From positions 62,001-126,000 of the IMG/VR virus record IMGVR_UViG_3300028864_000014: 64,000 nt of DNA; one strand, written 5' to 3'. The notes under the pieces were generated by a model, which was not told the origin of the DNA, searched no databases, and saw nothing but the letters and a program-made list of their open reading frames with translations. Shown here piece after piece: positions 3-61,361 of the stretch; positions within the stretch are counted from its first letter, which is position 1, and each line of letters opens with the position of its first letter. The position numbers were made by a program, and so were the translations under genes.

Positions 3-236
3 AAAAATAATAGTGGTAAAATAGTAGCATCAAAAAAATCAGGAGTTGGTGTTACTTATATGATAAAGTATAATAATATACCTGAGTATTTAAAAAAATA
101 TTTTGTTAGTTTTAACTTTACAAATGACGCAGAACATAAATATATGAGAGCAATAAAAAGACATAACACAATTGAATTCATAGGATCAAAAGAAGAATGT
201 GAAATTAAAATATCAACAAAAAAATATAATTTATAA
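3..236 (+). CDS. 5'-truncated small protein ending in STKKYNL; paralog of 22797..23144
   Basis: Frame 3 is open from the window edge to TAA 234-236 (KNNSGKIVAS...MIKYNNIPEYLKKYF...STKKYNL). It is not in the ORF track. The stop overlaps the next ATG. Confidence 0.75.
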   Translation, partial: KNNSGKIVASKKSGVGVTYMIKYNNIPEYLKKYFVSFNFTNDAEHKYMRAIKRHNTIEFIGSKEECEIKISTKKYNL

Positions 237-15475: not shown

Positions 15476-15490
15476 TTTTTTTATATATAT
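15476..15490 (+). promoter_or_regulatory. candidate phage late promoter
   Basis: TTTTTTTATATATAT 18 nt upstream of GTG 15509. Confidence 0.55.
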
Positions 15491-15508
15491 AAGAAAAAAC
15501 CAATTTCT

Positions 15509-19762: not shown

Positions 19763-19774
19763 ATATATAACAAC

Positions 19775-20080
19775 ATGACAGATTATGATACTCTTTATAT
19801 AAGAAGTTTTAGCGGTATGACTGGATCTACAATGAATAGTGGTATCACATCAAGTGGTACCACTGATTTTCATCAGTTTATAGATGAAAACGGTAATGTA
19901 TCTCAAATACCAAAAATTAAAAAAATAAGATATAAATATTACATTGACCCTGATACTCCTGATAGAATAATAACTGAATCTTGTGTAATAGGAGTAGATG
20001 ATGAAGAAAGTGGTCCATGTAGCTTCGGCGTAGCACTGGGCATTGGTGACGATACAATGTGCTTAGCTAAATATGATTAG
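19775..20080 (+). CDS. hypothetical protein, probably structural
   Basis: Rich in S, G and T; directly downstream of the large structural gene. Confidence 0.6.
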   Translation: MTDYDTLYIRSFSGMTGSTMNSGITSSGTTDFHQFIDENGNVSQIPKIKKIRYKYYIDPDTPDRIITESCVIGVDDEESGPCSFGVALGIGDDTMCLAKYD

Positions 20081-20384
20081 AAATATATTCTAAATATAAA
20101 TTATTCATAAATCTTTCAATATTAATACATATTGAAAATTTGCCATAGATATCATCTTTCTCATTATAACATCTGAATCCAACATTATCTACAAAAAACA
20201 ATCTAATAAGTTTATTATCAATTAATAAGCCTTGTCTTTTTGATAACATCTTAAGTTGTTCATCATCAAATTTAATCAATAAATTATCAATAGTATTATC
20301 AATGCTAATATCATATTTTTTGTTTTTAAGTTTTTCTAAACTATCTTTAAGTGAAAAAAAATCATTCATCATTTTTATCATCAT
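20067..20384 (-). CDS. hypothetical protein
   Basis: Part of an overlapping three-ORF minus-strand run. Confidence 0.6.
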   Translation of the reverse strand: MMIKMMNDFFSLKDSLEKLKNKKYDISIDNTIDNLLIKFDDEQLKMLSKRQGLLIDNKLIRLFFVDNVGFRCYNEKDDIYGKFSICINIERFMNNLYLEYISNHI

Positions 20385-29500: not shown

Positions 29501-30256
29501 ATTTTGACACTTGAAAATTTTAATTTTAAAATTAAAGAATTAAAATCAGAAATTGAAAAATACCAAGAATATAAAGTTAAAATTGATGAAAATAAAAAAA
29601 TTCAAATTTCAATTGATGATGTAGATTATAATATTAAAAATTATAAAGAAAAAATAAAAGATTTTTCAAAAATAAATATTGATTTAGAAAAAAACATTCT
29701 TCTTAAAGAAACTGACATATTTAATATATCTACTAAAATAAAAAAATATTTAAAGCAAAAGAAACGAGATGAGTTATTAAAGGAGTATCAAAAATGTATT
29801 AGTCGTGATGGATTACCTACATTTTTATTAAAAAAATCCATTCATTTAATAAATAAAGAATTGAATGATTTACTGAGTAATGTTGATTTTACATTATTCT
29901 TTGATGAAAATTTGAATTTGAGACTTAGTGCAGATGATAGACTTGATACTAGTCAAAATGCTATTGAAAGCTCTGGTAAGGAAAGGACATTTTGTGCCCT
30001 TGCTTTGAAAATATCTTTGAGACAAATAAATGTAAAATCCAAATCTACTTTCATTGTTTTAGATGAAATTATGGGTAAATTAATTGATGGTAAGAAAACA
30101 AAATCTGTTCAACAATTTTTAGAATTTATTGATGAATTGAAATATAAAGTAAATAAAATAGTAATTATTGAGCAAGTGCATAATATAAATTTTGATGCTT
30201 CAATTGAAGTTGATAAAGACGATGAATTAATTTCTCACTTAGAATTAGTTTATTAA
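26504..30256 (+). CDS. fused SbcD-SbcC (Mre11-Rad50; T4 gp47-gp46-like) nuclease-ATPase
   Basis: Phosphoesterase motifs ADVH, VGDLF, RGNHD and GDIH; Walker A GENQEGKTT; coiled coil with CPSC Zn hook; SSGKE signature; Walker B IVLDE. Confidence 0.92.
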   Translation: MKIAHLADVHIRNLERHEEYDKIFQKIIKKLQELQPDRIVIVGDLFESYIEISNEAEIIAGDFLNKLSNIAKVIIVRGNHDIRKKSLNRVDSIETVVKLMNNPNVTYYDKTGFYDDDNDNFVWVVYEHSDKDNDPWLNNKKTDDKIHIGLFHDPVLNVTSNTGKVFNDANKYKNINYFNNNDFVLIGDIHKRQYLRNDKSAAYCGSTIQQSYGETVENHGFLLWNIKSPSDFNVTEYDIENDHTFINLYIDESSDYDNLNLSANNIGKDTEIKVHWKEYSSIINTVNEKKIRDYIKNKFNTIKVVFEKNYLYTDILSSKMLSESIDLTDTETQREIFNEYLVEQKYKKDDIESILNIDDIINSRIQLVDVLKNTEWSIDKFWFSNFKSYGDDNVIEWKDINGIVQIHGENQEGKTTILDALTYILYGKTTTTLSPEKFGDSRYINNKRELDFVNGGAVINSNGNKFVIQRKTERVWNKAHTSLTSCPTSLDFYKSEDICEKNKLTDEVKSKTQKELDSILGDLKDFIRLSFTNADNLNDLLSENRSIFMDNIIRDAGYDIFETKSNEFKEYKKEIIEEKLIVNIQDSEENIKELNSDIVDIKAIVDTNISEIERIEKELLLYNITRDELNKKLSNIDLSMLTFNEDLNLNTIKNYNTKIEESKIQRVNLEKEIDKLPTEFDSSKLDDFKIKLKQTNLKISELKDKISTLKNSLLESDGKIDKVNVKIEELKQNEIKKILSKITANDLQIEVIKNKKSNIIKDEIKKITSQIQVFELESIELASNIKLLQKDGINAKKSNDELDKEIETFKNSKSCPSCGRAYDKNDPNYSEHLAHLEDKIRSLEIKKEPNLLIIKDCLLKYKELKNDSIDCNSNIFNYEDMKKRLEQGDYNEDILSKLKDVGSSKTLRQDNIELNISIENIENNNFDNYLTLNENIDKGKTLITNIEKGKDNTLQLIKNIEVELKEINIDDIENNITIEEIKKDNFDLRNKKISNRDNIILTLENFNFKIKELKSEIEKYQEYKVKIDENKKIQISIDDVDYNIKNYKEKIKDFSKINIDLEKNILLKETDIFNISTKIKKYLKQKKRDELLKEYQKCISRDGLPTFLLKKSIHLINKELNDLLSNVDFTLFFDENLNLRLSADDRLDTSQNAIESSGKERTFCALALKISLRQINVKSKSTFIVLDEIMGKLIDGKKTKSVQQFLEFIDELKYKVNKIVIIEQVHNINFDASIEVDKDDELISHLELVY

Positions 30257-31693: not shown

Positions 31694-31987
31694 ATGGAGA
31701 AAACAAAAACAAAATCATTAGATGAAATTTTATCAGAAAATGGAATTTCTACTAATACTGAAGAAGAATTTAAATTGATATTATGGAATGATGATGTAAA
31801 TTCATTTGAATGGGTTATCACATGCTTAATGGCTTATTTAAAATTTCCACCTAAAAAAGCAGAAGCATCAGCCTATAATGTACATCTTATTGGTAAAGAT
31901 GTTATTAAAACTGGTTCAAGAGAAACATTAGAGCCTTATAAAAAATTATTAGAAGAGAGAGGATTATCTCTCACAATAGAACAATAG
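31694..31987 (+). CDS. clpS: ATP-dependent Clp protease adaptor ClpS
   Basis: KLILWNDDVNSFEWVITCL...AYNVHLIGK; the WNDD form is typical of Bacteroidota ClpS as I recall it. Confidence 0.9.
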   Translation: MEKTKTKSLDEILSENGISTNTEEEFKLILWNDDVNSFEWVITCLMAYLKFPPKKAEASAYNVHLIGKDVIKTGSRETLEPYKKLLEERGLSLTIEQ

Positions 31988-32276: not shown

Positions 32277-34811
32277 ATGAATTACTCAAAAGAAGTAGAA
32301 GAAGTCATTAAAAAAAGTAAGGACATTGCTATTAAGATTAAGTCTAAATCAATCAGACCTGAACATTTATTTCTATCAATGATAGATGATGAATATTCTG
32401 ATGCATCTCAAATTATGAGGGATCTTAATCTAAATATTGATGCCATTAAGAAAACAATATCTGAGTGGTCTTCTGTGATGCAAGAACAAATTGGAGTAAA
32501 TTCACTCAGAAAAAATGCTTCAATTCCACTGGAATTAGAAACTGAAAAAATTCTAAAAGATTCTGTTGTTTTTGCGAAATCAATGGATTCAGATGAAGTT
32601 TGTATTGAACATGTTTTTTATTCAATATTGGATAATAGCAATAATCTTGTTTCAGAGTTATTTAATAAATCACCTGAAATTTTAAGAAGTTTGAAAAATA
32701 GATTGAAGAATGAAGAAGAAGAACTTAATATTAATGATGAATTAGAAAATGTTAATAATATGGACGAAGAACAAGAAGAAGTAACAGGAAGTTCAAAAAG
32801 TAAGTCAAAAACTAAATTGATTGATCAATTTGGTACAAATCTTACAAATCTCGCAAAAGAAGGAAAACTTGATCCAGTAGTTGGACGTGCAGATGAAATT
32901 AAAAGAATTACACAAATTTTATCCAGACGTAAGAAAAACAATCCTGTATTAGTTGGAGAACCTGGTGTAGGTAAATCAGCAATTGTTGAAGGATTAGCTC
33001 AATTAATCGTAGATGGACTTGTTCCTGAAAATTTACAAAACAAGAAAGTTATCACTCTTGATATGGGTTCATTAGTAGCAGGAACTAAATATCGTGGTGA
33101 ATTTGAGCAACGATTAAGAGGTATTGTAAAAGAGATGGAAGAAAATCCTGATATCATTCTATTTATAGATGAAATTCACACTATTATTGGAGCTGGAGGT
33201 GCTCAAGGATCACTTGATGCTTCTAATATGTTGAAACCAGGATTGGCAAGAGGAACATTCAGATGTATTGGTGCTACTACTCTTGAAGAATATCGTAAAT
33301 ATATTGAAAAAGATGCAGCATTAGAACGTAGATTTCAGAAAGTTGTTGTAGAAGCAACTAGCAAATCAGAAACATTAGAAATTCTTAAGAATATCAAAAA
33401 ACAATATGAAGATCATCACAAAGTTACTTATACTGATGATGCATTAGAAGCTTGTGTCAATTTATCTGACAAATATATATCAGAAAAATTCTTTCCTGAT
33501 AAAGCAATTGATGTTCTAGATGAGGCTGGTGCTATGGTTCATGTGAATGGTACAAGTGCTATTCCTGAAAAAATTGTTGAGCTTAGTAAGAAAATAAAAA
33601 TATCTATAGTAGAAAAACTTGATTGTATTTCTTCACAAAAATATGAACTTGCTGCTGATCATAGAGATAATGAAAAACAATGGAAAGCTGAACTTGAAAG
33701 TGAAAGAGAAGTATGGAGTCAAGAGCACTCAGATAATCGTGCAATGGTAACAGAAAAAGATATTGCTGAGGTTGTCGCTCTTATGACAAAAATTCCAGTA
33801 GATAATGTTTCTATTGATGAAAACAATAAGCTTAAATTTATGGCTGATAAAGTAAAAACTATTGTAATTGGACAAAACGAAGCTGTTGATAAGATAGTTC
33901 AATCAGTCAAGAGATCAAGAGTTGGAATTAATAGTCATGATAAGCCAGTTGGATCATTTATTTTCTCTGGTCCTACAGGAGTAGGTAAAACCTATCTTGC
34001 AAAAATTATGGCAAAAGAATTATTTGGTTCTGAAGATGCGATGATTAGAATTGATATGAGTGAATTTATGGAAAAATTCTCCGTATCTAGATTAGTAGGA
34101 GCACCTCCAGGTTATGTTGGATATGAAGATGGAGGTAAATTAACTGAAGCAGTAAGACGTAAGCCTTATTCTATTATTCTTCTTGATGAAATAGAAAAAG
34201 CTCATCCTGATGTTCAAAATATTCTACTTCAAGTATTGGATGATGGGGTATTAACTGATAGTAATGGCCGTAAAGTGGATTTTAAAAATACTATCATTGT
34301 TATGACAACAAATGCAGGTTCAAGAAAATTGAAAGATTTTGGAACTGGTATTGGATTTGGACTTTCTAAAAACAATCAAGATTCTAAAAATTCTGTTCTT
34401 AAAAAAGAATTAGAAAAAGTGTTTAGTCCAGAATTTTTAAATCGTGTTGATGAAGTTATAAATTTCAATTCATTAAGTAAAGAAAATATTTGTGGTATTA
34501 TTGATGTTGAATGTAAATCATTAATCTCAAATCTTAAAGAAAAAGGATATGATGTAATTATATCTCAATCACTTAAAGATTATTTATTTGAAAATGGTTA
34601 TGATGAAAACTATGGTGCAAGACCATTGAAGAGAGCTATTCAGAGTAATATTGAAGATAAACTTACTGATGCGATTATTGATCAAGAAATCTCAGTTGGT
34701 GATACATTATCATTAATATACGACAAAGATAGTTCATCTGTAAAAATTTCAAAATTATCATCTAAAGAAATTAAAAGTGGTAATATTTTAACTGAAAATA
34801 CCACAGTTTAA
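32277..34811 (+). CDS. clpC: ClpC-type AAA+ chaperone/protease ATPase
   Basis: Clp-N repeats (PEHL, IEHV); Walker A GEPGVGKS and GPTGVGKT; FIDEIH; UVR-like [10 protein letters not shown]; GAPPGYVGY; [10 protein letters not shown]. Confidence 0.95.
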
Positions 34812-36422: not shown

Positions 36423-37052
36423 TCAAACAACGTTATCATTATATCTTTCCTTATTAGAGCATTCTGGAATGACTCTTATTTTAGGTATTATAGGTATTTT
36501 TAGTTCTTTTTCTTCAGATTCTTTAATCTTAATTAATCCAAAAATTGCATAATTAATCATATCAAAATAATTTGCATCGATACCTTCCGATATTATTGTT
36601 TTTCCATCATTATCTTCAATTTGTTTAGTTCTATAAATTTTCATTAAAATCAAATCTGTATAAGATTCCATTCTCATTGATCTCCATGCCTCACCATAAT
36701 CATGATTTTTATTCATCATCAATTCCTTAGATTTCTGTATATATTTATCGTATAATTTTATTCCATCATCATATGATAAATCATCTGAATTTGAATATCC
36801 TAGTTCTAATTGAATTAACCCCATTATTCCATAATTTACAATAGCTATCAACTCAGAATTTATTCCTTCATTTATTTTTATTACCGATTTGGTTTCAATA
36901 CTTCTGATTCTATTCGCTTTTATGAATATCTGATCTGTAACAGAGGTAGGTCTTAATATTCTCCAAGCTGCACCATAATCTTTCATTTTTTTAGCGTAAA
37001 TATCAGAGCAATTGTTTATTATTTGATTAAATTGTTCATTTGTTTTATTCAT
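36423..37052 (-). CDS. DUF1599 (nucleotide-modification-associated domain 1) protein, two repeats
   Basis: KKMKDYGAAWR...DQIFIKANRI and NKNHDYGEAWR...DLILMKIYRT, each followed by NY.I.GLI. Confidence 0.85.
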   Translation of the reverse strand: MNKTNEQFNQIINNCSDIYAKKMKDYGAAWRILRPTSVTDQIFIKANRIRSIETKSVIKINEGINSELIAIVNYGIMGLIQLELGYSNSDDLSYDDGIKLYDKYIQKSKELMMNKNHDYGEAWRSMRMESYTDLILMKIYRTKQIEDNDGKTIISEGIDANYFDMINYAIFGLIKIKESEEKELKIPIIPKIRVIPECSNKERYNDNVV

Positions 37053-37662
37053 TGTTTTTTAATATTTTATTTAGTTTATCTGATCTTTTTTCCTTCACTG
37101 ATAATCTTTCATTATCATATAGAATTTTATCAAATTTGAATTTTACTTTCAATTTACTTAAACTACAGTACCCATTATTGAATTTGAAATTATTTTCAAT
37201 GTCAATAAATTGAAATTTTGTGTAACATAATGTTAATAAGTCAGATATCACAATTTTTACTGATATTTCTTTTTTGTCACTTATTAATTCCATTAATTTT
37301 TCATACGGTTGCATTCTATTGCCAATCATCTTACAATTAAAAACAAAAGTATTATCATTAATTTCACATATAGTATCAGATAATATTTTATCATCATCAT
37401 CTAATTCAAAATAAACAGAATAAGACAAATCATCTAACTCATCTTTTTTTTCACTTGATTTCCACATGGAACCATATGAGCTAACAGGTACTCCAGTATA
37501 AACACCAGGAGAACCATTATAAATAGTAGAATAATATGGATTTGTATTTGTATTTGTATATGTATCAGAACATGCACTAAAAATACCTGATGATATGTTT
37601 GATATTGAAGTAGCTGCAGATTTTGATTTACTTGATGCGTATGAACTTGTGTTTAATGACAT
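37045..37662 (-). CDS. hypothetical protein with RxxKL-type tag
   Basis: Ser-rich N-terminus; ends EKRSDKLNKILKNNE. Confidence 0.7.
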   Translation of the reverse strand: MSLNTSSYASSKSKSAATSISNISSGIFSACSDTYTNTNTNPYYSTIYNGSPGVYTGVPVSSYGSMWKSSEKKDELDDLSYSVYFELDDDDKILSDTICEINDNTFVFNCKMIGNRMQPYEKLMELISDKKEISVKIVISDLLTLCYTKFQFIDIENNFKFNNGYCSLSKLKVKFKFDKILYDNERLSVKEKRSDKLNKILKNNE

Positions 37663-49965: not shown

Positions 49966-50679
49966 ATGTCTAAGATAAAAATTAATAATGAGTACGCTGT
50001 AAGAATAAATCATCCAGAACTTGGAGTTTTCTATTTCTCATATTGCGGGCTCAATGAAAAATTTAATCCGTTTGTTTTTACTAAAATTTTATCTAAAGTT
50101 CAAACTTGGAAAACTATAAAATTTGCAGAAAAACAAATAAATATAATTATATCACAGTTGGAATCTAATGAAGGTAAAATTTATTTATCTCTTGGAACAA
50201 ATATAGAGTGTGAATATACATCTAAAATTTTTCAATCCAGAAAAAAATATTATTATCTTATTGACTCGATACAAAATGTTAGATCAAAAATAAATTTAAT
50301 AACAGCAAATAAAAACGTTAACAATTTAAATGTTACATTAATTGAAGATTCAGAAGAAATTTGTAATGTTTATAAAAATATAAAAAATAATTTTTTCATA
50401 AATAAAATTAAAAAACTAGATAATTGTGATGTTGATTTTGATGAAATATTAAAATATTCAAATGATACATTATTATCTATAAATACATACAATGCAATTC
50501 AAAATGAATTAGTACTTAAAGTGAATAACTATCTTGAAGATATCTCATTATATAAAAAAGATATTTCAATCTTAGAAGATTCTAAAACTTATAAAGGATT
50601 ATATTTAGATATTATAGATGCATCTTATGGATTTAGAAGATTAAAATTAAATACACTTAATTTATTACAAGATAATTAA
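49966..50679 (+). CDS. hypothetical protein with RxxKL-type tag
   Basis: Ends FRRLKLNTLNLLQDN. Confidence 0.7.
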   Translation: MSKIKINNEYAVRINHPELGVFYFSYCGLNEKFNPFVFTKILSKVQTWKTIKFAEKQINIIISQLESNEGKIYLSLGTNIECEYTSKIFQSRKKYYYLIDSIQNVRSKINLITANKNVNNLNVTLIEDSEEICNVYKNIKNNFFINKIKKLDNCDVDFDEILKYSNDTLLSINTYNAIQNELVLKVNNYLEDISLYKKDISILEDSKTYKGLYLDIIDASYGFRRLKLNTLNLLQDN

Positions 50680-51899
50680 TTATACACTAATCCTGCCTGC
50701 CAATAAGTTTTTCCAGACACAGTTATATATTCATAGTCACTTAATCCATCAACAGTAATTTCATCTATTTCTGTTTCACTTGAATAATTAACTGGTTCTC
50801 CATTCCATGCTGATATATTAATTAAACTTGAAATTCTATCAATTCTGCAAGCCAAACCTACTTTATCAGAACCAGAAAAACATAATCCTATTATTTTTTT
50901 AGTTCCTGAAAAATCTGCAATTAACGCAGAACCAGAATCTCCATGCCAAATAGGATAATCACACATATCACTTATTGGTTGAGTTGTACCAGTTGTTGCT
51001 ACAAAAACTATAAGATCAGAAAACACAATAGGAGTACTAACTCCTTGAATATTATATGATACTGTTGCTACTGCAGGAGATTGATAAACTAATAATTTAG
51101 TGATATATTCACCTTTAGCTCCTGTTGTTCTACCTGCACTATATAATAATGGATTATATGATATATTACCTGGTTTTAATAAGTTATTTATTTCGTCTGT
51201 TGTTGCAAATGAGTAAGAAGATGATTCTAATCCTTCTTGATTATATGATGTTTTTTTATTTATGTAAGTTTGTCCAGAATAAATTGTTGTCAATGAAACC
51301 TCTGCATAATTATATTCAGTTTGCCTTATAGGATAATATCTTTTAACTATTCCAATTGGAAACATATCATTTGGTGTTTCATGTTTTTGTCCTACTATAT
51401 TACCTTTGATATTATATATTTCTCCATCTATTGATCTTTCTGAACATATAGAAGAATCATCAGAAAATACATGATTATTTGATACTCCAACTAATGAATT
51501 TGTTTCATTATCTATAGCTAAAAATCCCAATGTACCAGAATAATTATACATTGATGTAATATTACTACAAGAAACTCCACATTTCAATGGACGAAATGTA
51601 TTTCTGTTTGATGGGGGAATTGTTTCCCAATCATAAAAAGAATCATCACAAAATTTTTCATAGCTACCAATTACTACATCAGTTTTTATTGTTTCATCAC
51701 CAATAACTAATGAATCTGGTAATAATTGTTCTGGTTTCAATTTATCATTATCAATTTTATCTTTAACAGTAAAAACTATTGATAACTCATCAGATATTAT
51801 TCCACTAGTGGTTTTATACCCATATCCAACTCCAATTATATTATCATCAGTATTTTTATGATACTCTTCTAATTTTTTTAATAACTCTTCTTGATTCAT
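50676..51899 (-). CDS. trypsin-like (S1, Nal1-like) serine protease
   Basis: N-terminal GVGYG...VFTV...TDV; GTLG; SNNHV (His); AGRTTG; GDSGS (Ser); Glu at the expected Asp position. Confidence 0.8.
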   Translation of the reverse strand: MNQEELLKKLEEYHKNTDDNIIGVGYGYKTTSGIISDELSIVFTVKDKIDNDKLKPEQLLPDSLVIGDETIKTDVVIGSYEKFCDDSFYDWETIPPSNRNTFRPLKCGVSCSNITSMYNYSGTLGFLAIDNETNSLVGVSNNHVFSDDSSICSERSIDGEIYNIKGNIVGQKHETPNDMFPIGIVKRYYPIRQTEYNYAEVSLTTIYSGQTYINKKTSYNQEGLESSSYSFATTDEINNLLKPGNISYNPLLYSAGRTTGAKGEYITKLLVYQSPAVATVSYNIQGVSTPIVFSDLIVFVATTGTTQPISDMCDYPIWHGDSGSALIADFSGTKKIIGLCFSGSDKVGLACRIDRISSLINISAWNGEPVNYSSETEIDEITVDGLSDYEYITVSGKTYWQAGLVYN

Positions 51900-52492
51900 A
51901 TTTTTTTTATTTCATTTGGTATATGTATAAACAATGTCTTAACTTTAAGTTTTTTGTCAATTATCTCGAATGCATTATTTGTTATTGTGGTTGTTGTGGT
52001 TGTAGTGTATATATCATTTGATATAGTTGATGTGATAATTATTACCGTTGTATTGGCTGTACTTGTATTTATCTTTGATTCTAATTGTGAAACATTTAAT
52101 ACTTGTTCATTTGATTGATATAACGGATGACTAGATATTATTTTAGTGTTTTTCCATGTACTACCATTTGATATTCTAAAAACCAATTTATCTTCTGATT
52201 CGTATCTTATATCTAATATTGATGTTATAAAATATTGTAAAAATTTCTTTGTTGAAGTATTGTCAAAATTATAAGATAAATACTCATTTAAAGTATTTAT
52301 TTTTTTATTGATAAATTCTATAGGAATATTATTAATATTCAATTTCATATCTGCTAAAAATGAAATATTATTTATATTTAAAAAATCTTTTATGTTTTTG
52401 GACTCTCCTATATGAAGACTAAATGTCACCCAATGATCAATAAACCAGCATTTCGCAATTGGTAATTTTGAATATTCAACTGATTTTTTCAT
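51896..52492 (-). CDS. hypothetical protein with Thr-rich segment
   Basis: 198 aa ORF. Confidence 0.6.
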   Translation of the reverse strand: MKKSVEYSKLPIAKCWFIDHWVTFSLHIGESKNIKDFLNINNISFLADMKLNINNIPIEFINKKINTLNEYLSYNFDNTSTKKFLQYFITSILDIRYESEDKLVFRISNGSTWKNTKIISSHPLYQSNEQVLNVSQLESKINTSTANTTVIIITSTISNDIYTTTTTTTITNNAFEIIDKKLKVKTLFIHIPNEIKKI

Positions 52493-53119: not shown

Positions 53120-53214
53120 TTTATATAAAATATGTTTTTTATTACTATTAATTAAATTATATATAAATAAAACTTTTTTTATTTTTTCTTTTATAATTAA
53201 AAAAACAAATTAAT

Positions 53215-53529
53215 ATGATTAACTTAGATATAAATATTGGTGTAGGTAATGGAAGTAATAAACTTACTATAAATGTAGAATCAATTAAATCATTCAATAG
53301 AAAAAAAGTAGAAATTGAAAAAATGTTAAGTTATTATTTTTTTGAATTTGATACAGAAAATGTCAGAAATGAGATAAAAGAAAATGTATTGAGAATTCTG
53401 AGTAATGATTTAATAAGTACCAGAATAGAAAAACTTAAAAAATTAAATGATATTTGTGAAGGTGATAATAAATTAAAAAATTATCATCAATACAATATCA
53501 TCAATAATATTGAAATAATAAAAAAATAA
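53215..53529 (+). CDS. tail-sheath C-terminal-like fragment with RxxKL tag
   Basis: YYFFEFDTENVRNEIKENV versus T4 gp18 YRLFELNNAFTRSSFR; TRIEKLKKL. Confidence 0.5.
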   Translation: MINLDINIGVGNGSNKLTINVESIKSFNRKKVEIEKMLSYYFFEFDTENVRNEIKENVLRILSNDLISTRIEKLKKLNDICEGDNKLKNYHQYNIINNIEIIKK

Positions 53530-53534
53530 TTATA

Positions 53535-54002
53535 ATGGCAATAGCACAGTTTTCTAATAGTTTGAATAGCTTACATGATGTAGAGCCTATTTATCTAACA
53601 CAATTTGAAGTTAGATTTAATAATACTTTTTTGACTGATAATTGTAGTTCTATAAAAAACGATATTATGATTTTTAATTTATATACTGTTAATGATGAAT
53701 TACAACCATTTCAGATTATAAATAATATGATTAATAATAATACTATTATAAATTATTTAGAAATTATAAATAGTAAAAAAGATGGTACTATAAAATATTG
53801 CTCTTTTTTGAAAAATTTCTCATTTGTCGAAATTTTAGGATTTCTTGATTTTGATTGGGATTCATGGGATAAAAGTGATTCAAAAATTAAAGATTTACGT
53901 GTAAAATTTAAATATGATAAAATGGATGTAGTCACATCAAAAAATTATAACAATTTTTTAAGAAAAATTAAACTTGAGTGCATAACTAAAAAAGATTCAT
54001 AA
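53535..54002 (+). CDS. tail-tube-like degenerate protein with RxxKL tag
   Basis: MAIAQFSNS...EPIYLTQFEVRF resembles N-termini of jumbo-phage tube proteins as I recall them; ends LRKIKLECI. Confidence 0.5.
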   Translation: MAIAQFSNSLNSLHDVEPIYLTQFEVRFNNTFLTDNCSSIKNDIMIFNLYTVNDELQPFQIINNMINNNTIINYLEIINSKKDGTIKYCSFLKNFSFVEILGFLDFDWDSWDKSDSKIKDLRVKFKYDKMDVVTSKNYNNFLRKIKLECITKKDS

Positions 54003-54022: not shown

Positions 54023-54427
54023 TTATTCTTCTTTTTCTTCTTCTAAGAATTCAATCTCATCATCATCATCAATATTTATCAATTTTATATTATCATCATA
54101 TACTACAAATTCTTTCAATTCTTCTATCATATCATAAAAATCTGATTCATCTAAACTATCAAGAAGGTCTGCCAATTCATCTTTTGATGGTTCATAATTA
54201 TCTTCATCTTTATATCCATCTAAACTATTTATACCTTGATTATCTAGAATTTCTAATATCTGATCAATAGCATCATGTTTATATTCCCAAAATGATTCAG
54301 TATTGTCATTCACTCTAACTTCCCATTTATTTTCTATTTCTTCATCATTAGTGGTATTTTCTATTTCCTCGTCATCAAGAATATTTTCTTTTATATATTC
54401 AAATTCATTAAATTTTTTAAGAGCCAT
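54023..54427 (-). CDS. highly acidic protein with CTS-like N-terminus
   Basis: Starts MALKKFNEFE; TTTTTATATATAC at 54455-54443. Confidence 0.75.
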   Translation of the reverse strand: MALKKFNEFEYIKENILDDEEIENTTNDEEIENKWEVRVNDNTESFWEYKHDAIDQILEILDNQGINSLDGYKDEDNYEPSKDELADLLDSLDESDFYDMIEELKEFVVYDDNIKLINIDDDDEIEFLEEEKEE

Positions 54428-54538: not shown

Positions 54539-55045
54539 ATGAAAAAATTTGAAACCGTATTTAAGACTTGGATAGGGAAAAATACGAATTCACAAATCAA
54601 AGCAATTGATAAAATTTCATCTGAAACAGGAATTGACGCCGAAGATTGGTTCTTTAATAATTTCTTACGTTTACAAACTGGTGATTTTAGTGGAACTGAT
54701 TTTTTAGAGGTACTACTTGAAAATTATTTATGTAATTTGACTCATAAATTTGAAAAAATTGTAGGAGAATATTTAGAAAGCACAGGAACTAGTTTTTATG
54801 GTGAGCCAATATATGATATAGATATTACATTGGATTATGATTATAAAAAAAATTGTATAGTTATTGACGAACAATATGGAAATAAATCTGATATTGAAAA
54901 AATAATAAAATCAATATCTCTTGATAATAAAATACTATTAACTAAAAATAAAATATTTACATACGTCATTAATGAAACAAAATTAAATATATTCTCAGAA
55001 AAAGAAGCAAGAATATTAAAATTGAAACAATTGAATGAAATATAA
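54539..55045 (+). CDS. hypothetical protein with RxxKL tag
   Basis: Ends EARILKLKQLNEI. Confidence 0.75.
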   Translation: MKKFETVFKTWIGKNTNSQIKAIDKISSETGIDAEDWFFNNFLRLQTGDFSGTDFLEVLLENYLCNLTHKFEKIVGEYLESTGTSFYGEPIYDIDITLDYDYKKNCIVIDEQYGNKSDIEKIIKSISLDNKILLTKNKIFTYVINETKLNIFSEKEARILKLKQLNEI

Positions 55046-55256
55046 AATTGGCGATATTATCATTTTTAATAAATCTAAAAAATCAAAATCAATCATAATA
55101 GAAATTATTCATCAACATTTATTTCATTATTATAGATTTAGATTTATTGATGAAAATAATACTCACATTATGAGTTGTGAAAATGTAGATAATTCATCAG
55201 AATTCTATATTAATTATATAAGAAAAGAAAAATTAAAAAATATAAATGAAATATAA
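55035..55256 (+). CDS. MKYKIGDI (SH3/KOW-like) cassette protein with RxxKL tag
   Basis: MKYKIGDII...IRKEKLKNINEI. Confidence 0.75.
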   Translation: MKYKIGDIIIFNKSKKSKSIIIEIIHQHLFHYYRFRFIDENNTHIMSCENVDNSSEFYINYIRKEKLKNINEI

Positions 55257-55471
55257 AATAGGTGATATTATCATTTTTGAAAGTTTCAAAACAAAAATAG
55301 TAAGAATTATTAATAGTAATAATTGTTATGAAATACATACATTTTTTAATAATCAAACATACACACAAGTTGTTCAATCTGAATATGTAGATAGATGCTC
55401 AAAAATAGATATTAAATCTATGAGAAAAGAAAAATTAAAAAATTTAAATGAAATATAAAATAGGTGATATT
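55221..55471 (+). repeat. two 49-bp direct repeats spanning gene junctions (one mismatch)
   Basis: AGAAAAGAAAAATTAAAAAAT(A/T)TAAATGAAATATAAAATAGGTGATATT at 55221-55269 and 55423-55471. Confidence 0.9.
55246..55458 (+). CDS. MKYKIGDI cassette protein with RxxKL tag
   Basis: MKYKIGDII...MRKEKLKNLNEI. Confidence 0.75.
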   Translation: MKYKIGDIIIFESFKTKIVRIINSNNCYEIHTFFNNQTYTQVVQSEYVDRCSKIDIKSMRKEKLKNLNEI

Positions 55472-55669
55472 GTGGTTGGCGAAATTTTAAAAATTAAAAT
55501 AGTAAGTATTTTAAATAATAAATATGAATATCGTTTAATGTGCTGTAAAAATCCAAAAGTCACAAATTGGACTACTGAATCAATAGACAATAAAACAGAA
55601 TTAGATAAACAATATTTAAGAAAAGAAAAATTAAAAAAATTATATGATACTTCAGCAATGGCTAAATAA
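55448..55669 (+). CDS. MKYKIGDI cassette protein with RxxKL tag
   Basis: MKYKIGDIV...LRKEKLKKLYD. Confidence 0.75.
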   Translation: MKYKIGDIVVGEILKIKIVSILNNKYEYRLMCCKNPKVTNWTTESIDNKTELDKQYLRKEKLKKLYDTSAMAK

Positions 55670-56617: not shown

Positions 56618-56881
56618 ATGATAATTGATAAAGGTTGGGGATATTGGGATTTGAAAAATTCCACAAGACTTGATGATATTGCATATTATTCATTTGTTCA
56701 AGATTATGTGAAGGACTATAAAGATTCAATATCATTTATGTCAAATATGGATTATGAACCACCTGATCAAACTTGGTTTTATTATCAAAGAAATAAAAAT
56801 AGTCATTATTCTTATCATTACAATAGTGCAAATAATTTTTTAAGAAAAGAAAAACTTGTTAAATTAAAAGAAATACAATAA
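56618..56881 (+). CDS. small RxxKL-tagged protein, paralog of 42284..42508
   Basis: GYWDLKNSTRLDDIAY...LRKEKLVKL. Confidence 0.7.
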   Translation: MIIDKGWGYWDLKNSTRLDDIAYYSFVQDYVKDYKDSISFMSNMDYEPPDQTWFYYQRNKNSHYSYHYNSANNFLRKEKLVKLKEIQ

Positions 56882-56884: not shown

Positions 56885-57562
56885 ATGAAAAAGAAAATAG
56901 TAATATTCACTGGTGCTGGAATAAGTGCAGAAAGCGGAATTCAAACTTTCAGGGATTCTGACGGACTTTGGGAGCAATATGATGTAAAAGACGTTGCAAC
57001 TATTGATGGTTGGAGAAAAGATAGACAATTAGTTTTAAAATTTTATAATGAAAGACATAAACAATTAGATACTGTAGAACCTAATTCAGCTCATTACTTT
57101 CTTGCTGAATTGGAAAAAAAGTATGATGTTCAGATAGTTACTCAAAATGTCGACGATCTCCATGAGAGAGCAGGAAGTACAAATGTTCTACATCTTCATG
57201 GACAATTAACAAAGATGAGAGCATTTAATAATTTTACTGTTTATGATTGGCCAAAAGATTTTGACATACAAACAGATAGTGTGGATGAAAATGGCGATAC
57301 ATTAAGACCACATATTGTTTGGTTTGGAGAAGCTGTTCCAAATATGGGTAAAGCTGAAAAAATAACAAAAGAAGCAGATATACTTATTGTAATTGGAACA
57401 TCATTACAAGTTTATCCTGCAGCAAATTTATTATATAAAGCAAATTTTAGAGCACCTATATATTATATTGATCCTTCTGATTCTGATATTGGTATAGATA
57501 TTAAAAATTTTACTCATATAAAAGAAACAGCAACAGAAGGAGTTAAAAAATTAAAATTGTGA
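56885..57562 (+). CDS. cobB: Sir2-family NAD-dependent protein deacylase
   Basis: GAGISAESGIQTFR, TQNVDDLHE, LHLHG, RPHIVWFGE and GTSLQVYPAA. Confidence 0.95.
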   Translation: MKKKIVIFTGAGISAESGIQTFRDSDGLWEQYDVKDVATIDGWRKDRQLVLKFYNERHKQLDTVEPNSAHYFLAELEKKYDVQIVTQNVDDLHERAGSTNVLHLHGQLTKMRAFNNFTVYDWPKDFDIQTDSVDENGDTLRPHIVWFGEAVPNMGKAEKITKEADILIVIGTSLQVYPAANLLYKANFRAPIYYIDPSDSDIGIDIKNFTHIKETATEGVKKLKL

Positions 57563-58350: not shown

Positions 58351-58604
58351 ATTCAATTAAAACAGTAAAATCAAGATATAGTATAACTACAATTTCACCA
58401 AATTTTTATAGTAATTTGTCATTAAGTGGCAATACAAATGATATTATTTCTGGTTCAACTGGATTATTAGAGCAAGGTTATATATTTGTTCCTTATATAA
58501 TGGCTACAACAACATCAATTATTACTGAATCAAGAGAACGTAAGATAAACAGACTAAGAGAAGAAAGAGTAGAAAAACTTAAAAAATTAGGATGGAATGA
58601 CTGA
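58347..58604 (+). CDS. small protein with gp23-like G-Y-x-x-x-P-Y motif and RxxKL tag
   Basis: LLEQGYIFVPYIMAT versus T4 gp23 DAGIYYAPYVALT; ERVEKLKKL. Confidence 0.55.
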   Translation: MNSIKTVKSRYSITTISPNFYSNLSLSGNTNDIISGSTGLLEQGYIFVPYIMATTTSIITESRERKINRLREERVEKLKKLGWND

Positions 58605-58875
58605 TAAAAAATATAAACAAGGAGATGAAGTTGTATGTATTAATAATGATGGAGGTTATGATAAATATTTAACAATTGGAAAAAAATATAAAATTCATTA
58701 TATTTATAAAGGAAAATTAACCAATTTAGATCATTTTAGGATAAAATCTGACAAAATAAATTCATTTTTTATAAGTCCATTAGGAATAATTTTTTTATCA
58801 CCAAATGAGTTTAAAATTAAGAAAAGAAAAGAAAAATTAGAAAAAATCAATAAATTAATTTTTAATGATATTTAA
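58597..58875 (+). CDS. GDEVVCI (SH3-like) protein with RxxKL tag
   Basis: QGDEVVCINN...LTIGKKY...RKEKLEKI. Confidence 0.75.
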   Translation: MTDKKYKQGDEVVCINNDGGYDKYLTIGKKYKIHYIYKGKLTNLDHFRIKSDKINSFFISPLGIIFLSPNEFKIKKRKEKLEKINKLIFNDI

Positions 58876-59113
58876 TCAAGGAGATGAAGTTGTTTGTATT
58901 CAAAATGTTGGTTATACTGATTTTTTAACAATTAGCAAATCATATAAAGTTTTACTTTCCTACTATGGAAGTGTAACAGAAACTGAACATATACGTGTTC
59001 AGAAAGATGATAAAAATGGTCATGTTGATATATTTAGTAGTAGATTTATATCTATCAAAGAATTCAAAAAAATAAAAAGAAAAGAAAAACTAAATATATT
59101 AAATCTAATATAA
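58865..59113 (+). CDS. GDEVVCI (SH3-like) protein with RxxKL tag
   Basis: QGDEVVCIQN...LTISKSY...RKEKLNIL. Confidence 0.75.
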   Translation: MIFNQGDEVVCIQNVGYTDFLTISKSYKVLLSYYGSVTETEHIRVQKDDKNGHVDIFSSRFISIKEFKKIKRKEKLNILNLI

Positions 59114-59141
59114 CATATAAATAATAAAAATAAAATAGGAT

Positions 59142-59363
59142 ATGAAAATTTTAAGAAAAAAAGACACTTTTAAGAAAGTACCTGACGCAAGCATTAATGA
59201 TGTTGTAGCTATCAAATCTTATATTGAACAAGGATGGAAGCATTGTTCAAAAAAAGAATATAAAGATTTTTTCAAAACTGCAGTTTCTGAGAAATTAGTT
59301 GAAAAGAAAATTGAAAAAGAAGAAATTAAAGAAAAAAAGAAAGAAAAGAAGCACGGCAAATGA
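59142..59363 (+). CDS. basic hypothetical protein
   Basis: 73 aa, Lys/Glu-rich. Confidence 0.6.
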   Translation: MKILRKKDTFKKVPDASINDVVAIKSYIEQGWKHCSKKEYKDFFKTAVSEKLVEKKIEKEEIKEKKKEKKHGK

Positions 59364-59794
59364 TTTTAGATATAATCAAATATGATGATTCTAACTCAGG
59401 AAAATTAAGAAAACTAAATGTAAATGTAAAAAAGGAAAATCCTTTTTTGCTTTCACTTATTAAAAATATGTTTGAAACTCTTAATTATCACAAATTTGAA
59501 TTTGGGTTATCTGCTCCACAAGTTGGACATAACTTAAATTTATTTGTTATTAATAATCCTGATTTAAAAGAAGTATTTATTAATCCAGAAATATATTTAG
59601 AAGGACTTTTTATTCAAAACAAAGAAAGATGTTTAAGCTTACCAAATTTAGAATTTCCTATAAATAGGAGATCAATTGTTAAGATTAAATATTATGATAT
59701 AAATTGGAATTATAAAATGTCTTCGTTTAAAGATTTAAATGCCATAGCTATTCAACATCAATTTGATCATATTAACGGAAAATTAATTATTTGA
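59360..59794 (+). CDS. def: peptide deformylase-like protein with degenerate active site
   Basis: GLSAPQVG, VFINPEI, ERCLS (canonical EGCLS) and QHQFDHING (canonical QHEMDHL.G). Confidence 0.85.
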   Translation: MILDIIKYDDSNSGKLRKLNVNVKKENPFLLSLIKNMFETLNYHKFEFGLSAPQVGHNLNLFVINNPDLKEVFINPEIYLEGLFIQNKERCLSLPNLEFPINRRSIVKIKYYDINWNYKMSSFKDLNAIAIQHQFDHINGKLII

Positions 59795-60177
59795 TGAATA
59801 TATTTAATAGAAAAAAAAGGGAATTAAAAAGGGAACTAAAATACAATGAACTGAACAAATTATTCAGGATTAAACATGGTATAATTTGTAATTGGAGGAT
59901 TAAAAAATATACTTTGCATCCAACTACAGTTGAAGGACTTGTTTTTGATGAAAAGTTTAATTCATTTTTTTTGAGAGAATATGGAATATTTCCACATTCC
60001 TTTAATGAGTTTGCTTGTATTAACTATTCCTTTGATCCAAAATTTGATAATTTTCCAGTTGATAAATTACAGGAATTATATAATAAAATTGAGTCTGTTT
60101 TTCCTGATCCATTTATTAAAATTAATAGATTAAAAAAATTAAAAAATATTAATTCTGTTAAATATGAAGAACGGTGA
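59791..60177 (+). CDS. hypothetical protein with RxxKL-type tag
   Basis: Ends INRLKKLKNINS. Confidence 0.7.
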   Translation: MMNIFNRKKRELKRELKYNELNKLFRIKHGIICNWRIKKYTLHPTTVEGLVFDEKFNSFFLREYGIFPHSFNEFACINYSFDPKFDNFPVDKLQELYNKIESVFPDPFIKINRLKKLKNINSVKYEER

Positions 60178-60394
60178 TAAAATTACTTATATTAGTAACG
60201 ATATTTGTGTTTTTGATAAATATAAAACATATACTATTATTAATATACACAATGATATTATAACATATGTGAGTTATCTTGATAATTATAAAAAGTTATG
60301 GTATATAGGTTGTAGTTATACTATGAATAAATTCATAACATATAATCAATATAGAAAATTAAAATTAAATAAAATTAATGAAAAAATATGTTAG
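60164..60394 (+). CDS. SH3-like small protein with RxxKL tag
   Basis: MKNGDKITYI...YRKLKLNKI. Confidence 0.7.
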   Translation: MKNGDKITYISNDICVFDKYKTYTIINIHNDIITYVSYLDNYKKLWYIGCSYTMNKFITYNQYRKLKLNKINEKIC

Positions 60395-60570
60395 TAAAAG
60401 AATTAATAGAAAAAATAGAAGAATTAAGAGTAATATATCCTAATATTGATGATATTGAAATTGGACCACTTTTTAATGGTGATTTAGTGATGATGATTAG
60501 TGATTTGACAATAGAAGAAGGCTCAGGATGGGAAACTGACGATGCAATTGGCATTATTTGGAATTGTTAA
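60388..60570 (+). CDS. hypothetical protein
   Basis: 60 aa acidic ORF (MLVKELIEKIEEL). Confidence 0.6.
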   Translation: MLVKELIEKIEELRVIYPNIDDIEIGPLFNGDLVMMISDLTIEEGSGWETDDAIGIIWNC

Positions 60571-60597
60571 GTTTTTATAAAAAATAATAAATATTAA

Positions 60598-60840
60598 ATG
60601 TTAGAAGAAATCATAAATAACTATCCAGATGAAGGAATTTTATCTGCTGATGGATTGGATGATGCAGTAATTGGATTAGAAATGAATTCAATGAGGTTAA
60701 TATATTCAGTATCTAAATGTATTGAAATTTTTATCAATGATGGAATGACAGAAGAAGAAGCATTAGAATTCTTTGAATTTAATACAGCAGGATCTTATAT
60801 GGGTGAACACACTCCAATATGGTGCTACGATGATTTTTAA
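60598..60840 (+). CDS. conserved phage hypothetical protein
   Basis: ADGLDDAVIG...YS..KC...GMTEEEALEFFEFN..GSYMGEHTPI is a family I recognise from environmental phages. Confidence 0.75.
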   Translation: MLEEIINNYPDEGILSADGLDDAVIGLEMNSMRLIYSVSKCIEIFINDGMTEEEALEFFEFNTAGSYMGEHTPIWCYDDF

Positions 60841-60900
60841 TTGATATAAAAATAAATAATTTTTTTATATCAATTATTTTCATTATATTTGTAAAAAAAT

Positions 60901-61101
60901 ATGAAAGATAAAAAATCAGATGAAATATATTCAAATTGGGTCAAAGAATCAGGAATAAAAGATTTAACTGGTAACCAATCAAAATTTGTCAAAATGATTA
61001 TATCAAATAGAAAAATTATCTGTGAAATCGGAAGTTTTAATAAAGTTTTTGTTAGCATTTATAAATATTTGAAAAATAATCGTGAAAAATTAGAAGATTA
61101 A
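60901..61101 (+). CDS. hypothetical protein
   Basis: 66 aa ORF. Confidence 0.55.
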   Translation: MKDKKSDEIYSNWVKESGIKDLTGNQSKFVKMIISNRKIICEIGSFNKVFVSIYKYLKNNREKLED

Positions 61102-61103
61102 AT

Positions 61104-61361
61104 ATGAAATCAATACTTTACAAAAAAGGTGAAAAATTTGTTTGTATAGATAATACATCTAGATATACTGGAGTAGAATTAGGCTATTCTTCTTTGACGT
61201 TATTGAAAATTGGCGGTGTTTACACATTTCGTGATATTAATAGTTATGGCGAAATGAATTTTTTGGAACTACGCGGATATAGTTTCAGAAAGCAAAGGTT
61301 TGTGAAATATTCAGAGTTAAGAAAGATAAAATTAGAAAAATTAAATACTATAAACATATAA
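61104..61361 (+). CDS. SH3-like small protein with RxxKL tag
   Basis: KKGEKFVCIDN...LRKIKLEKL. Confidence 0.75.
   Translation: MKSILYKKGEKFVCIDNTSRYTGVELGYSSLTLLKIGGVYTFRDINSYGEMNFLELRGYSFRKQRFVKYSELRKIKLEKLNTINI

Follow-up and report, generated by a model that had tools for sequence, protein, structure and literature searches.

A conserved gene pair related to tail sheath and tail tube, located away from the tail genes of a peat-bog megaphage

Why would a huge phage keep, far from its tail genes, a second and much reduced sheath-like and tube-like gene in tandem? We addressed this question in a 64,000-nucleotide stretch (the window, positions 62,001 to 126,000 of IMG/VR record IMGVR_UViG_3300028864_000014) of a ~700-kb AT-rich megaphage related to the 735-kb phage LR756501 and to the Lak phages. 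A sequence-only reading had described two small genes in sheath-then-tube order, outside the structural operons and both carrying an RxxKL tag, and had proposed that they are domesticated fragments acting as decoys or inhibitors of defence sensors that recognise structural proteins, or as assembly modulators. Our results confirm that observation: ORF-A (104 aa) and ORF-B (155 aa) are real ATG-initiated genes 5 nt apart, flanked by minus-strand genes and conserved as a pair in four related contigs (L018, L026, L027 and L028). The proposed interpretation is only partly supported, since the derivation of both genes from the sheath and tube families, their order, location, reduction, shared tag and maintenance under selection hold, whereas the decoy or modulator function remains an inference, with which the loss of the tube's ring-stacking loops, the fast evolution and the non-structural neighbourhood are compatible but which none of them demonstrates. 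The features of the locus are collected in Table 1.

Table 1 Features of the cassette and related loci (window coordinates unless marked as record coordinates).
Position	Strand	Feature	Observations
53120..53214	+	Upstream intergenic region of the cassette	Conserved TATATATAAAT-AAAACTTTTT and TATAAT-like blocks in an alignment of four relatives; promoter presumed; the same TATATATAA...AAACTTT element sits 57 nt before the 205-aa tube paralogue
53215..53529	+	ORF-A, 104 aa	Small protein modelled with a β-hairpin, short helices and one long helix (AF2 pLDDT 77); conserved upstream of ORF-B in close relatives; homologues 47-98% identical in L018, L026, L027 and L028
53275..53403	+	Sheath-derived segment of ORF-A	Residues 21-63; corresponds to the helix-FExN(D/T)-helix element of the sheath C-terminal domain
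53422..53445	+	RxxKLxxL tag of ORF-A	R70-L77, RIEKLKKL; R70, K73, L74, K75 and L77 invariant in the ORF-A family alignment; followed by a 24-aa tail that one relative lacks (the L018 homologue stops 3 residues after the tag)
53535..54002	+	ORF-B, 155 aa	Loop-deleted paralogue of the phage's gp19-type tail tube protein
53559..53936	+	Tube-fold domain of ORF-B (predicted structure)	Residues ~9-134; N-loop and β-sandwich kept; β2-β3 loop (~45 aa) and α-loop (~13 aa) missing; VIA alignment ranges 8/9..131 against gp19 and the KP1 tube
53937..53999	+	C-terminal helix of ORF-B	Residues 135-154 in the model; carries the tag R143-K-I-K-L-E-C-I; replaces the ...DYWEDFYY end of the true tube; F141, R143, K144, I145 and K146 invariant among 8 homologues; tag kept in family members down to ~25% identity
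37045..37662	-	Second tagged mini-tube paralogue, 205 aa	~80-aa N-terminal extension that is not sheath-like; ORF-B family HMM E 6.9e-22; hhalign 98.6%
record 16543-20145	-	True sheath	1200 aa
record 14416-14979	-	True tube

We first asked whether ORF-B belongs to the tail tube superfamily (gp19/Hcp/MTP fold). T4 gp19-type tail tube proteins (Pfam Phage_T4_gp19 / Phage_TTP_2) have the same fold as Hcp, Afp1 and Pvc1. The AF2 model of ORF-B has a pLDDT of 89 and shows a β-sandwich with a flanking helix and an N-terminal arm, and all of its top Foldseek and VIA hits are tail tube, Hcp, gp3 or gp48/54 proteins. The KP1 tube (9ev2_T1) superposes with Z 11.8 and an rmsd of 2.2 Å over 114 aa and T4 gp19 (5w5f_A) with Z 11.6 and 2.6 Å over 115 aa. 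In total 99 PDB chains score Z>=8, and at least 50 of the matches are tail-tube or Hcp-type proteins, in concordance with the ESM Atlas search. At the sequence level, profile-profile comparison (hhalign) of the ORF-B family with the phage's true tube family gives a probability of 98.2% and E 3.4e-14 over 124 columns, and an HMM of the ORF-B family finds the true tube at E 2.1e-8 among the 390 ORFs of the record. The motifs ...EPIY..LFEV.F... and LDFDW(D/N)S...V.F.YD parallel the phage's own tube (WEPIHKNLYEV; ELSWDSS...FVADYWE). The ORF-B family has 53 representatives at 50% identity.

No Pfam or PHROG model reached its threshold for ORF-B or for any of 50 family members, and Pfam and PHROG scans of ORF-A likewise gave nothing usable. 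The models PF06841, PF04985 and PF23849 were silent on the record, although the control for PF23849 was also silent. Searches of the region and of ORF-B with megablast and tblastn against INPHARED phages found no match. Profile searches of PDB sequences with two family alignments, including that of ORF-B, returned only a short PA14-like similarity to RsgI3 (E 0.0011, two stretches of 20-27 residues), which we judged to be chance.

The sequence-only reading had considered both genes far too short or degenerate. For ORF-B this is not the case: its tube domain of ~126 aa is a loop-deleted but complete core, and only ORF-A is a true fragment. The loss of the β2-β3 loop is seen both as a gap in the alignment with the true tube family and as a 2-residue turn between strands 37-41 and 44-48 in the model (DSSP). 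Published work indicates that this loop is the largest inter-ring contact of tail tubes, and that its deletion abolishes tube growth in T5 and SPP1 and leaves hexameric rings in YSD1 (PMC8718954). ORF-B lacks this long loop expected of a functional major tail tube protein, and it also lacks the α-loop, which together with the β2-β3 loop stacks tube rings.

To test the sheath-like character of ORF-A, we compared it with the phage's own sheath. A single-sequence phmmer search of the proteome gave the sheath only an E-value of 0.93, which at first suggested no relation, but family-level tests reversed this view. An HMM of the ORF-A family core, with the tag removed, was run against all 390 ORFs, and the best non-self hit is the true sheath at residues 1106-1136 (E 3.5e-4; next hit 0.034). 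That score was reached in 2 of 200 shuffled proteomes and never in the shuffled sheath. In addition, hhalign against the C-termini of eight sheaths, an alignment that left out the Lak-B7 sheath because of its genetic code, gives a probability of 92% and a score of 47.1, compared with a maximum of 22.4 in 400 column shuffles. ORF-A thus shares a short local homology, covering only 43-58 columns, with the sheath element (R)INVRRL...LEK.I.DA...FE.N(D/T)..TR..FK (T4 gp18 domain IV; Pfam Phage_sheath_1C), where ORF-A reads FFEFDTENVRNEIK and the sheath of Pseudomonas phage Lauda reads VFELNTPEVRNEIK.

On the other hand, ORF-A is not a complete sheath protein. Only ~5% of the 1200-aa sheath is represented, there are no N- or C-terminal handshake strands and no outer domains, and the fragment cannot form a sheath lattice. 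Fold searches with the ORF-A model found only generic long-helix matches and no sheath structure (best Z 6.0; BFVD E>0.6), and the Atlas gave no usable hit. Prediction of a complex between ORF-B and ORF-A returned a score of 0.01, which is no evidence either way.

We next examined the tag. The motif R-x-x-K-L-x-x-[LI] is found near the C-terminus of 78 of 390 ORFs, on at least 56 unrelated cores, and is absent from the tail and replication blocks; no recognised structural protein carries it. In a six-frame search 80 of 106 hits lie 8-25 residues before stops, whereas a reversed-motif control gave 19 hits with no positional bias. The clade-specific form of the peptide, [LI]-R-K-x-K-L-x-K-[LI]-N, is shared by about 20% of the phage's ORFs. 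We tested whether the tag is a DNA-level signal, such as a promoter or RBS for the next gene, and rejected this: there is no conservation outside the codons, synonymous Leu and Arg codons vary, and ORF-B carries the tag although it has no downstream co-oriented gene. The constraint is therefore on the protein. Literature searches for the tag string found nothing relevant.

The genomic context and the rate of change suggest an accessory rather than a core character. The pair (ORF-B at 115.5 kb of the record) lies about 95 kb from the true sheath and tube, among TK, RNase H-like, SIR2 and protease genes. In a more distant relative (L024) the ORF-B homologue sits between a peptidase M16 gene and NAD-salvage and Clp genes, and the neighbourhood is non-structural in three different genomic contexts. 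Identity to relatives is 56-70% for ORF-B and 47-76% for ORF-A, against 72-94% for flanking genes. The dN/dS values are 0.22-0.61 for ORF-B (0.50-0.61 against L018, L027 and L028; 0.22 against L026) and 0.54-1.07 for ORF-A, against 0.12-0.24 for the flanks. Although NG86 estimates are rough at 24% GC, the pair changes 2-3 times faster than its flanks. By contrast, the true tube is at least 55% identical in at least 120 of 275 clusters. LR756501 holds several mini-tubes, one of them frameshifted, which fits a dynamic accessory family.

What our analysis establishes is that the cassette is a relic of the phage's own sheath-tube module: ORF-B is a diverged paralogue of the gp19-type tail tube protein that keeps the N-terminal arm and the β-sandwich core but has lost two loops and has a basic helix in place of its C-terminus, while ORF-A keeps only a ~45-60-residue piece of the conserved sheath C-terminal domain, and both carry the shared peptide. 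Everything beyond this, namely the origin, the oligomeric state and stacking of ORF-B, any presence in virions, the binding of a sensor or rival machine and the recognition of the tag by a Clp unfoldase, is inferred. The origin is probably a segmental duplication spanning the 3' end of the sheath gene and the adjacent tube gene, followed by reduction; in LR756501 the sheath ends 152 nt before the tube starts.

As a mechanism we favour, tentatively and with less than even confidence, that the two proteins are not building blocks of the tail but soluble, non-polymerising mimics of the sheath and tube surfaces, with a decoy or dominant-negative role. In this view ORF-B could at most form rings or cap a ring and could not stack into a tube, and the pair would act by competitive binding to whatever recognises sheath or tube, be it a host sensor that fires on tail proteins or a contractile assembly (a rival phage, a tailocin or a T6SS) that it would poison. 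No such sensor or contractile system has been identified as a target, and the sequence was found only in DNA metagenomes from peat; the model rests on sequence and predicted structure alone. The shared tag would put the pair under the same handling as the other tagged accessory proteins, which could be targeting or timed turnover by the ClpS, IGF-loop Clp ATPase and ClpP that the phage encodes. The Clp ATPase gene lies at window positions 32277-34811.

The concept has a parallel in phage counter-defence proteins such as DSAD1, which blocks DSR2, a system activated by the tail tube protein; in both cases a phage protein would occupy the site where a sensor binds a tail protein, although such inhibitors are not known to be paralogues of the trigger. 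The tag, in turn, resembles C-terminal recognition peptides of Clp unfoldases, such as the ssrA tag and the basic C-terminal end of MuA, in being a short, conserved, basic and hydrophobic peptide placed on unrelated proteins. It differs in that it lies in a helix 2-5 residues from the end (27 residues in ORF-A) and not at the extreme terminus. The only comparative hint of a link, based on a single genome, is that the tagless relative LR756501 has the ATPase but no ClpP.

A serious rival, which we consider somewhat less likely, is that both are minor virion proteins: ORF-B a tube-terminating or tube-initiating ring, like T4 gp3 or gp48/gp54, and ORF-A a small sheath-capping or sheath-stabilising partner, both encoded away from the main tail block as gp3 and gp15 are in T4. 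T4 gp3, a tube-fold protein encoded outside the gp18-gp19 pair and used as a single non-polymerising ring, matches the ORF-B model as well as gp19 does (9mkb_AC, 175 aa; Z 11.6, 127 aa), so that a capping role fits the fold equally well. The retained N-loop would allow docking on one face of a tube ring, and a ring that cannot accept or donate the β2-β3 contact is what a cap would look like (PMC8718954; PMC12929629). BFVD and Atlas hits include 'tail completion and sheath stabilizer' proteins, and TATATATAA-type upstream elements also precede some tail genes. Canonical terminators could not be enumerated from the record, which covers only ~33% of the genome. Arguing against this reading are the fast evolution of the pair compared with its flanks and the true tube, the non-structural neighbourhoods, the presence of two or more copies per genome with a frameshifted copy in LR756501, and a tag shared with ~78 small non-structural ORFs. 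Moreover, T4 gp3 keeps loops on both ring faces to bind gp19 and gp15, is a conserved single-copy gene among tail genes and has no shared C-terminal tag.

It is also possible, though unlikely, that the sheath and tube ancestry is incidental, with ORF-B a ring-shaped scaffold or chaperone used as Hcp is used for cargo, ORF-A one more small tagged early protein, and function defined by the tag pathway. In support, the tag is the most conserved part of both proteins, the pairing is limited to close relatives (in L024 and in another relative, L022, the ORF-B homologue has other neighbours), and mini-tubes without a tag exist in LR756501, so the fold and the tag are separable. However, retention of the sheath motif in ORF-A and of the tube N-arm motif M-x-L-x-H/Q-F...EPIY..LFEV in ORF-B suggests that the ancestral interaction surfaces are still under selection, and no cargo or receptor has been identified. 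Finally, non-functional leftovers of a duplication, or chance similarity of two ORFans, are very unlikely and already largely refuted, because, despite the dN/dS of ~1.07 over 80 codons for ORF-A against L018 and its few detectable homologues, both frames are intact in every relative examined, the dN/dS values of ORF-B are 0.22-0.61, the ORF-B family keeps its length and motifs across 53 clusters down to 25% identity, the tag residues are invariant and the similarity statistics are far above the shuffled controls.

Paralogues of tail tube proteins are already described as structural parts, namely terminators, initiators and Hcp. We found no description of a conserved cassette that pairs a sheath remnant with a tube core stripped of its polymerisation loops, placed among accessory genes and evolving fast. 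If the pair acts by mimicry, it would be the first case of a phage using cut-down copies of its own tail proteins against host sensors or competing contractile systems, and it would provide a simple sequence signature to look for in other huge phages. Independently, the shared peptide on a fifth of the proteome, next to a phage-borne Clp protease set, makes a directly testable hypothesis about how megaphages address or time their many small proteins. A more far-reaching combination, which is doubtful but not excluded, is that the cassette is a purpose-built pair of dominant-negative mimics, a loop-less tube ring and a sheath helix fragment, that blunt host immune sensors or poison rival contractile machines, and that belong to a much larger, previously undescribed system in which the C-terminal address peptide (RKxKLxK[LI]N) would be read by phage-encoded machinery, for example ClpS/ClpA-C/ClpP for timed removal before the phage's own tails assemble.

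We also looked for signals of expression. The T4-type late promoter TATAAATA is not enriched (45 found against 41 expected), a σ70-type scan was uninformative at 21% GC, and timing cannot be inferred from the upstream TATATATAA/AAACTTT elements. For the 205-aa paralogue, we tested whether the N-terminal extension is a fused mini-sheath, and found no match of its N-terminus to ORF-A or to the sheath.

The IMG/VR virus record under study is 235,318 bp long, is rated 33% complete by CheckV and has a GC content of 24%, and homologues of the ORFs studied here occur on contigs of up to 711,471 bp. The record encodes a baseplate spike (Phage_base_V + M23), a tail sheath (phrog_34521, E 5.6e-75) and a tail tube (phrog_45 and phrog_32623). 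The tube is 48.7% identical to that of the 735-kb uncultured phage LR756501 and 27% identical to Lak Prevotella phages, and it also matches Tenacibaculum, Chryseobacterium and Flavobacterium phages. This is therefore a contractile-tailed megaphage, probably of a Bacteroidota host, and it is found in many peat metagenomes. The features considered in this analysis are listed in the table.

Coordinates of the features in the record and in LR756501 (window positions refer to bases 62001-126000 of the record)
Feature	Coordinates	Strand	Product length
ORF-A, with sheath remnant	window 53215-53529		104 aa
ORF-B, tube paralogue	window 53535-54002		155 aa
Tail sheath	record 16543-20145	-	1200 aa
Tail tube	record 14416-14979	-	187 aa
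Three small ORFs separating sheath and tube	record 14979-16543		175, 118 and 133 aa
Second tagged mini-tube paralogue	window 37045-37662	-	205 aa
Gene overlapping the second mini-tube	window 36423-37052	-	209 aa
ClpS-like adaptor	window 31694-31987	+	
Clp ATPase	window 32277-34811	+	844 aa
ClpP, just right of the window	record 130534-131052		
Examples of tagged ORFs or stretches	window 3298-3801	-	
	window 4749-5060	-	
	window 11696-12263		
	window 49966-50679		
	window 54539-55669		
	window 56618-56881		
	window 58597-61361		
Very acidic protein	window 54023-54427	-	134 aa
Three tandem tagged paralogues	window 55035-55669	+	70-73 aa each
SIR2-like gene	window 56885-57562	+	225 aa
Protease-like gene and poly-Thr gene	window 50676-52492	-	407 and 198 aa
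Mre11-Rad50/SbcC-type fusion	window 26504-30256	+	1250 aa
Collagen-repeat protein	window 7089-9476	-	795 aa
Split mini-tube and following mini-tube of LR756501	L032 (a stretch of LR756501) 1401-2168, LR756501 ~675.7-676.5 kb		63, 92 and 116 aa

ORF-A and ORF-B are co-oriented, lie 5 nt apart and are bracketed by minus-strand genes. Neither reaches any Pfam or PHROG model. Both are conserved as a pair in four related contigs, with ORF-B 56-95% and ORF-A 47-98% identical to their homologues.

To establish the identity of ORF-B, we carried out an exhaustive profile search, which found 53 representative clusters of proteins of ~140-160 aa, and predicted the structure from a 50-sequence alignment with AlphaFold2 (pLDDT 89, pTM 0.79). 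Every leading Foldseek match of the model in PDB and BFVD is a tail tube, Hcp, tube terminator or baseplate-tube protein. VIA-align gives Z 11.8 for the KP1 tube (rmsd 2.2 Å, 114 aa), Z 11.6 for T4 gp19 (2.6 Å, 115 aa) and Z 11.6 for a 175-aa T4 chain taken to be gp3, and ESM Atlas agrees independently. Among the 390 ORFs of the record, the family HMM finds three proteins, namely ORF-B itself, a second tagged paralogue (E 6.9e-22) and the true tube (E 2.1e-8). Profile-profile comparison with 23 true-tube homologues gives a probability of 98.2% and E 3.4e-14 over 124 columns.

This alignment shows what ORF-B has lost: about 45 residues are missing between its residues 37 and 40, and about 13 residues after its helix, corresponding to the β2-β3 loop and the α-loop of the major-tail-protein fold. 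In the model, strands 37-41 and 44-48 are joined by a two-residue turn. According to a review of solved tubes, the β2-β3 loop makes the largest ring-to-ring contact, and its deletion abolishes tube formation in T5 and SPP1 and leaves hexameric rings in YSD1 (PMC8718954). On the other hand, ORF-B keeps the N-terminal arm motif (M-A-L-P-H-F...EPIY..LFEV), which it shares with the true tube (MGLAHF...WEPIHKNLYEV), while the ...DYWEDFYY end of the true tube is replaced by a linker and a predicted helix (residues 135-154) that bears the tag. The gene overlapping the second mini-tube paralogue does so by 8 nt and has a weak N-terminal transcription-regulator hit (phrog_809, plus phrog_1485); the same TATATATAA...AAACTTT element lies 57 nt upstream of the paralogue, as it does for ORF-A.

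Our first tests of ORF-A against the sheath were negative: a single-sequence phmmer search gave the sheath E 0.93, and fold searches found only generic helices. The family profile changed this view. When an HMM of the ORF-A core, with the tag removed, was run against all 390 ORFs, the best non-self hit was the true sheath, at residues 1106-1136 of 1200 (E 3.5e-4; next hit 0.034), and in 200 shuffled proteomes that score was reached twice, and never in the sheath. We then aligned the sheath C-termini of this phage, LR756501, a T4-like phage, a Schizotequatrovirus, two Kyanoviridae members, Pseudomonas phage Lauda and Stenotrophomonas phage RAS14. Comparison of the ORF-A family with this alignment by hhalign gives 92%, E 6e-7, with ORF-A residues 21-63 pairing with sheath residues 1095-1137. 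Null controls were far lower, since 400 column shuffles reached at most 22.4 against 47.1 observed, the reversed alignment gave 15.2 and the tube family gave 10.4.

The matched element is the universally conserved ...LEK.I.DA...FE.N(D/T)..TR..[FI]K of the sheath, where ORF-A reads FFEFDTENVRNEIK and the Lauda sheath reads VFELNTPEVRNEIK. The AlphaFold2 model of ORF-A (pLDDT 77) has a hairpin, helices at 24-39, a loop at 40-47 and a long helix from residue 48, which is compatible with a helix-loop-helix. ORF-A is thus a ~5% remnant of a sheath and not a miniature sheath.

In LR756501 the sheath gene ends 152 nt before the tube gene starts, the two genes being adjacent, while in the present phage three small ORFs separate them. 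We infer that a duplication spanning the 3' end of the sheath and the tube gene would yield exactly a sheath C-terminal piece followed by a tube. Mini-tubes predate the tag. LR756501 has family members at 295 kb and 675.7 kb, the latter split by a frameshift into two overlapping frames and followed immediately by a further mini-tube ending ...LESWEDKYF, a tandem and partly broken array; none of these members carries the tag. That genome has zero matches to the RKxKLxK[LI] codon pattern, against 43 in this 235-kb record.

We next characterized the tag across the record. The motif R..KL..[LIV] occurs 106 times in six-frame translation and 80 of these occurrences lie 8-25 residues before a stop, with a peak at 11-13, while a reversed-motif control gave 19 hits with no positional bias. 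The tag sits on 78 of 390 ORFs (about 20%), with a median length of 82 aa, which fall into at least 56 BLAST-distinct cores once the tag is removed; they are mostly proteins of 60-110 aa in tandem arrays, and none is in the tail or replication blocks. The consensus is [LI]-R-K-x-K-L-[KE]-K-[IL]-N-x-x-COOH, the peptide ending 2-5 residues before the stop. DNA conservation is confined to the constrained codons, and Leu is TTA about 70% of the time and CTN about 30%, so selection acts on the peptide. The tag is invariant in ORF-A and ORF-B homologues while the cores diverge, is kept in ORF-B relatives down to ~25% identity, and is also seen in related AT-rich contigs. Tagged genes are the fastest-evolving in the locus. 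Among them, the three tandem paralogues overlap (ATGA-type), each starting MKYKIGDI... and each ending in the tag, and are only 39-44% identical to their counterparts in L018, a related contig.

The phage also encodes a ClpS-like adaptor, a ClpA/C-type double-AAA ATPase with a GIGFG (IGF-type) loop, and ClpP, which together make a complete Clp protease set, and the two ORFs directly downstream of ClpP carry the tag. The tagless LR756501 has the ATPase but no ClpP, which is a lead rather than evidence.

To assess whether the pair is accessory or structural, we compared its context and its rate of change with those of other genes. The cassette lies ~95 kb from the tail module, among thymidine kinase, RNase H-like, SIR2-like and protease genes. 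A distant homologue lies between a peptidase M16 gene and NAD-salvage and Clp genes, and another lies next to a DUF2400 gene. Identity to four relatives is 47-76% for ORF-A and 56-70% for ORF-B, against 72-94% for flanking genes, and dN/dS (NG86, rough at this GC) is 0.54-1.07 for ORF-A and 0.22-0.61 for ORF-B, against 0.12-0.24 for flanking genes. The true tube is at least 55% identical in at least 120 of the 275 clusters found. These features fit accessory, conflict-type genes better than core tail parts. T4 gp3 shows, however, that a tube-fold ring encoded apart from gp18 and gp19 can be structural (PMC12929629).

The sequence-only reading had described a sheath-like and then a tube-like gene in canonical order, both tagged, far too short or degenerate and outside the structural operons. 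This observation is confirmed on all points, with the one correction that ORF-B is a complete, though loop-deleted, tube core and not a fragment. Its interpretation is supported only in part, for the derivation of both genes from the sheath and tube families; that the pair would be decoys or inhibitors of structural-protein sensors or assembly modulators is compatible with the loss of the loops, the fast evolution and the non-structural neighbourhood, none of which demonstrates it. What our analysis supports well is identity and ancestry, with high confidence for ORF-B and somewhat less, though still good, confidence for ORF-A, while the duplication and any function of the pair, including binding and handling through the tag, are inferred. 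We tentatively favour soluble, non-polymerising mimics of sheath and tube surfaces that would act by competition, as a decoy or a dominant-negative, and would be handled through the shared tag; a prediction of the complex of ORF-A with ORF-B gave no answer. A tail-capping role is a doubtful but close alternative, and a role defined by the tag and unrelated to ancestry is more unlikely still.

The very acidic protein (pI 4.05, runs of D and E), encoded convergently with ORF-B, is kept beside it in all four relatives (75-83% identity, dN/dS ~0.15) and could be a DNA mimic or a partner for basic tags. The 225-aa gene is 94% identical to an L018 gene annotated with the Pfam SIR2 family and is the most conserved gene of the neighbourhood. 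The protease-like gene (phrog_20754) and the gene with a poly-Thr tract are both present here and in L026, another of the related contigs, but absent from the syntenic site in L018, which instead has a 101-aa and a 373-aa gene inserted after the acidic protein gene. Elsewhere in the window, an Mre11-type phosphoesterase and a Rad50/SbcC-type ATPase are fused in a single ORF that is conserved in the relative L024, and a protein with collagen triple-helix repeats and a weak CBM_5_12 hit lies next to a 717-aa ORF with no family, these being possibly fibre proteins.
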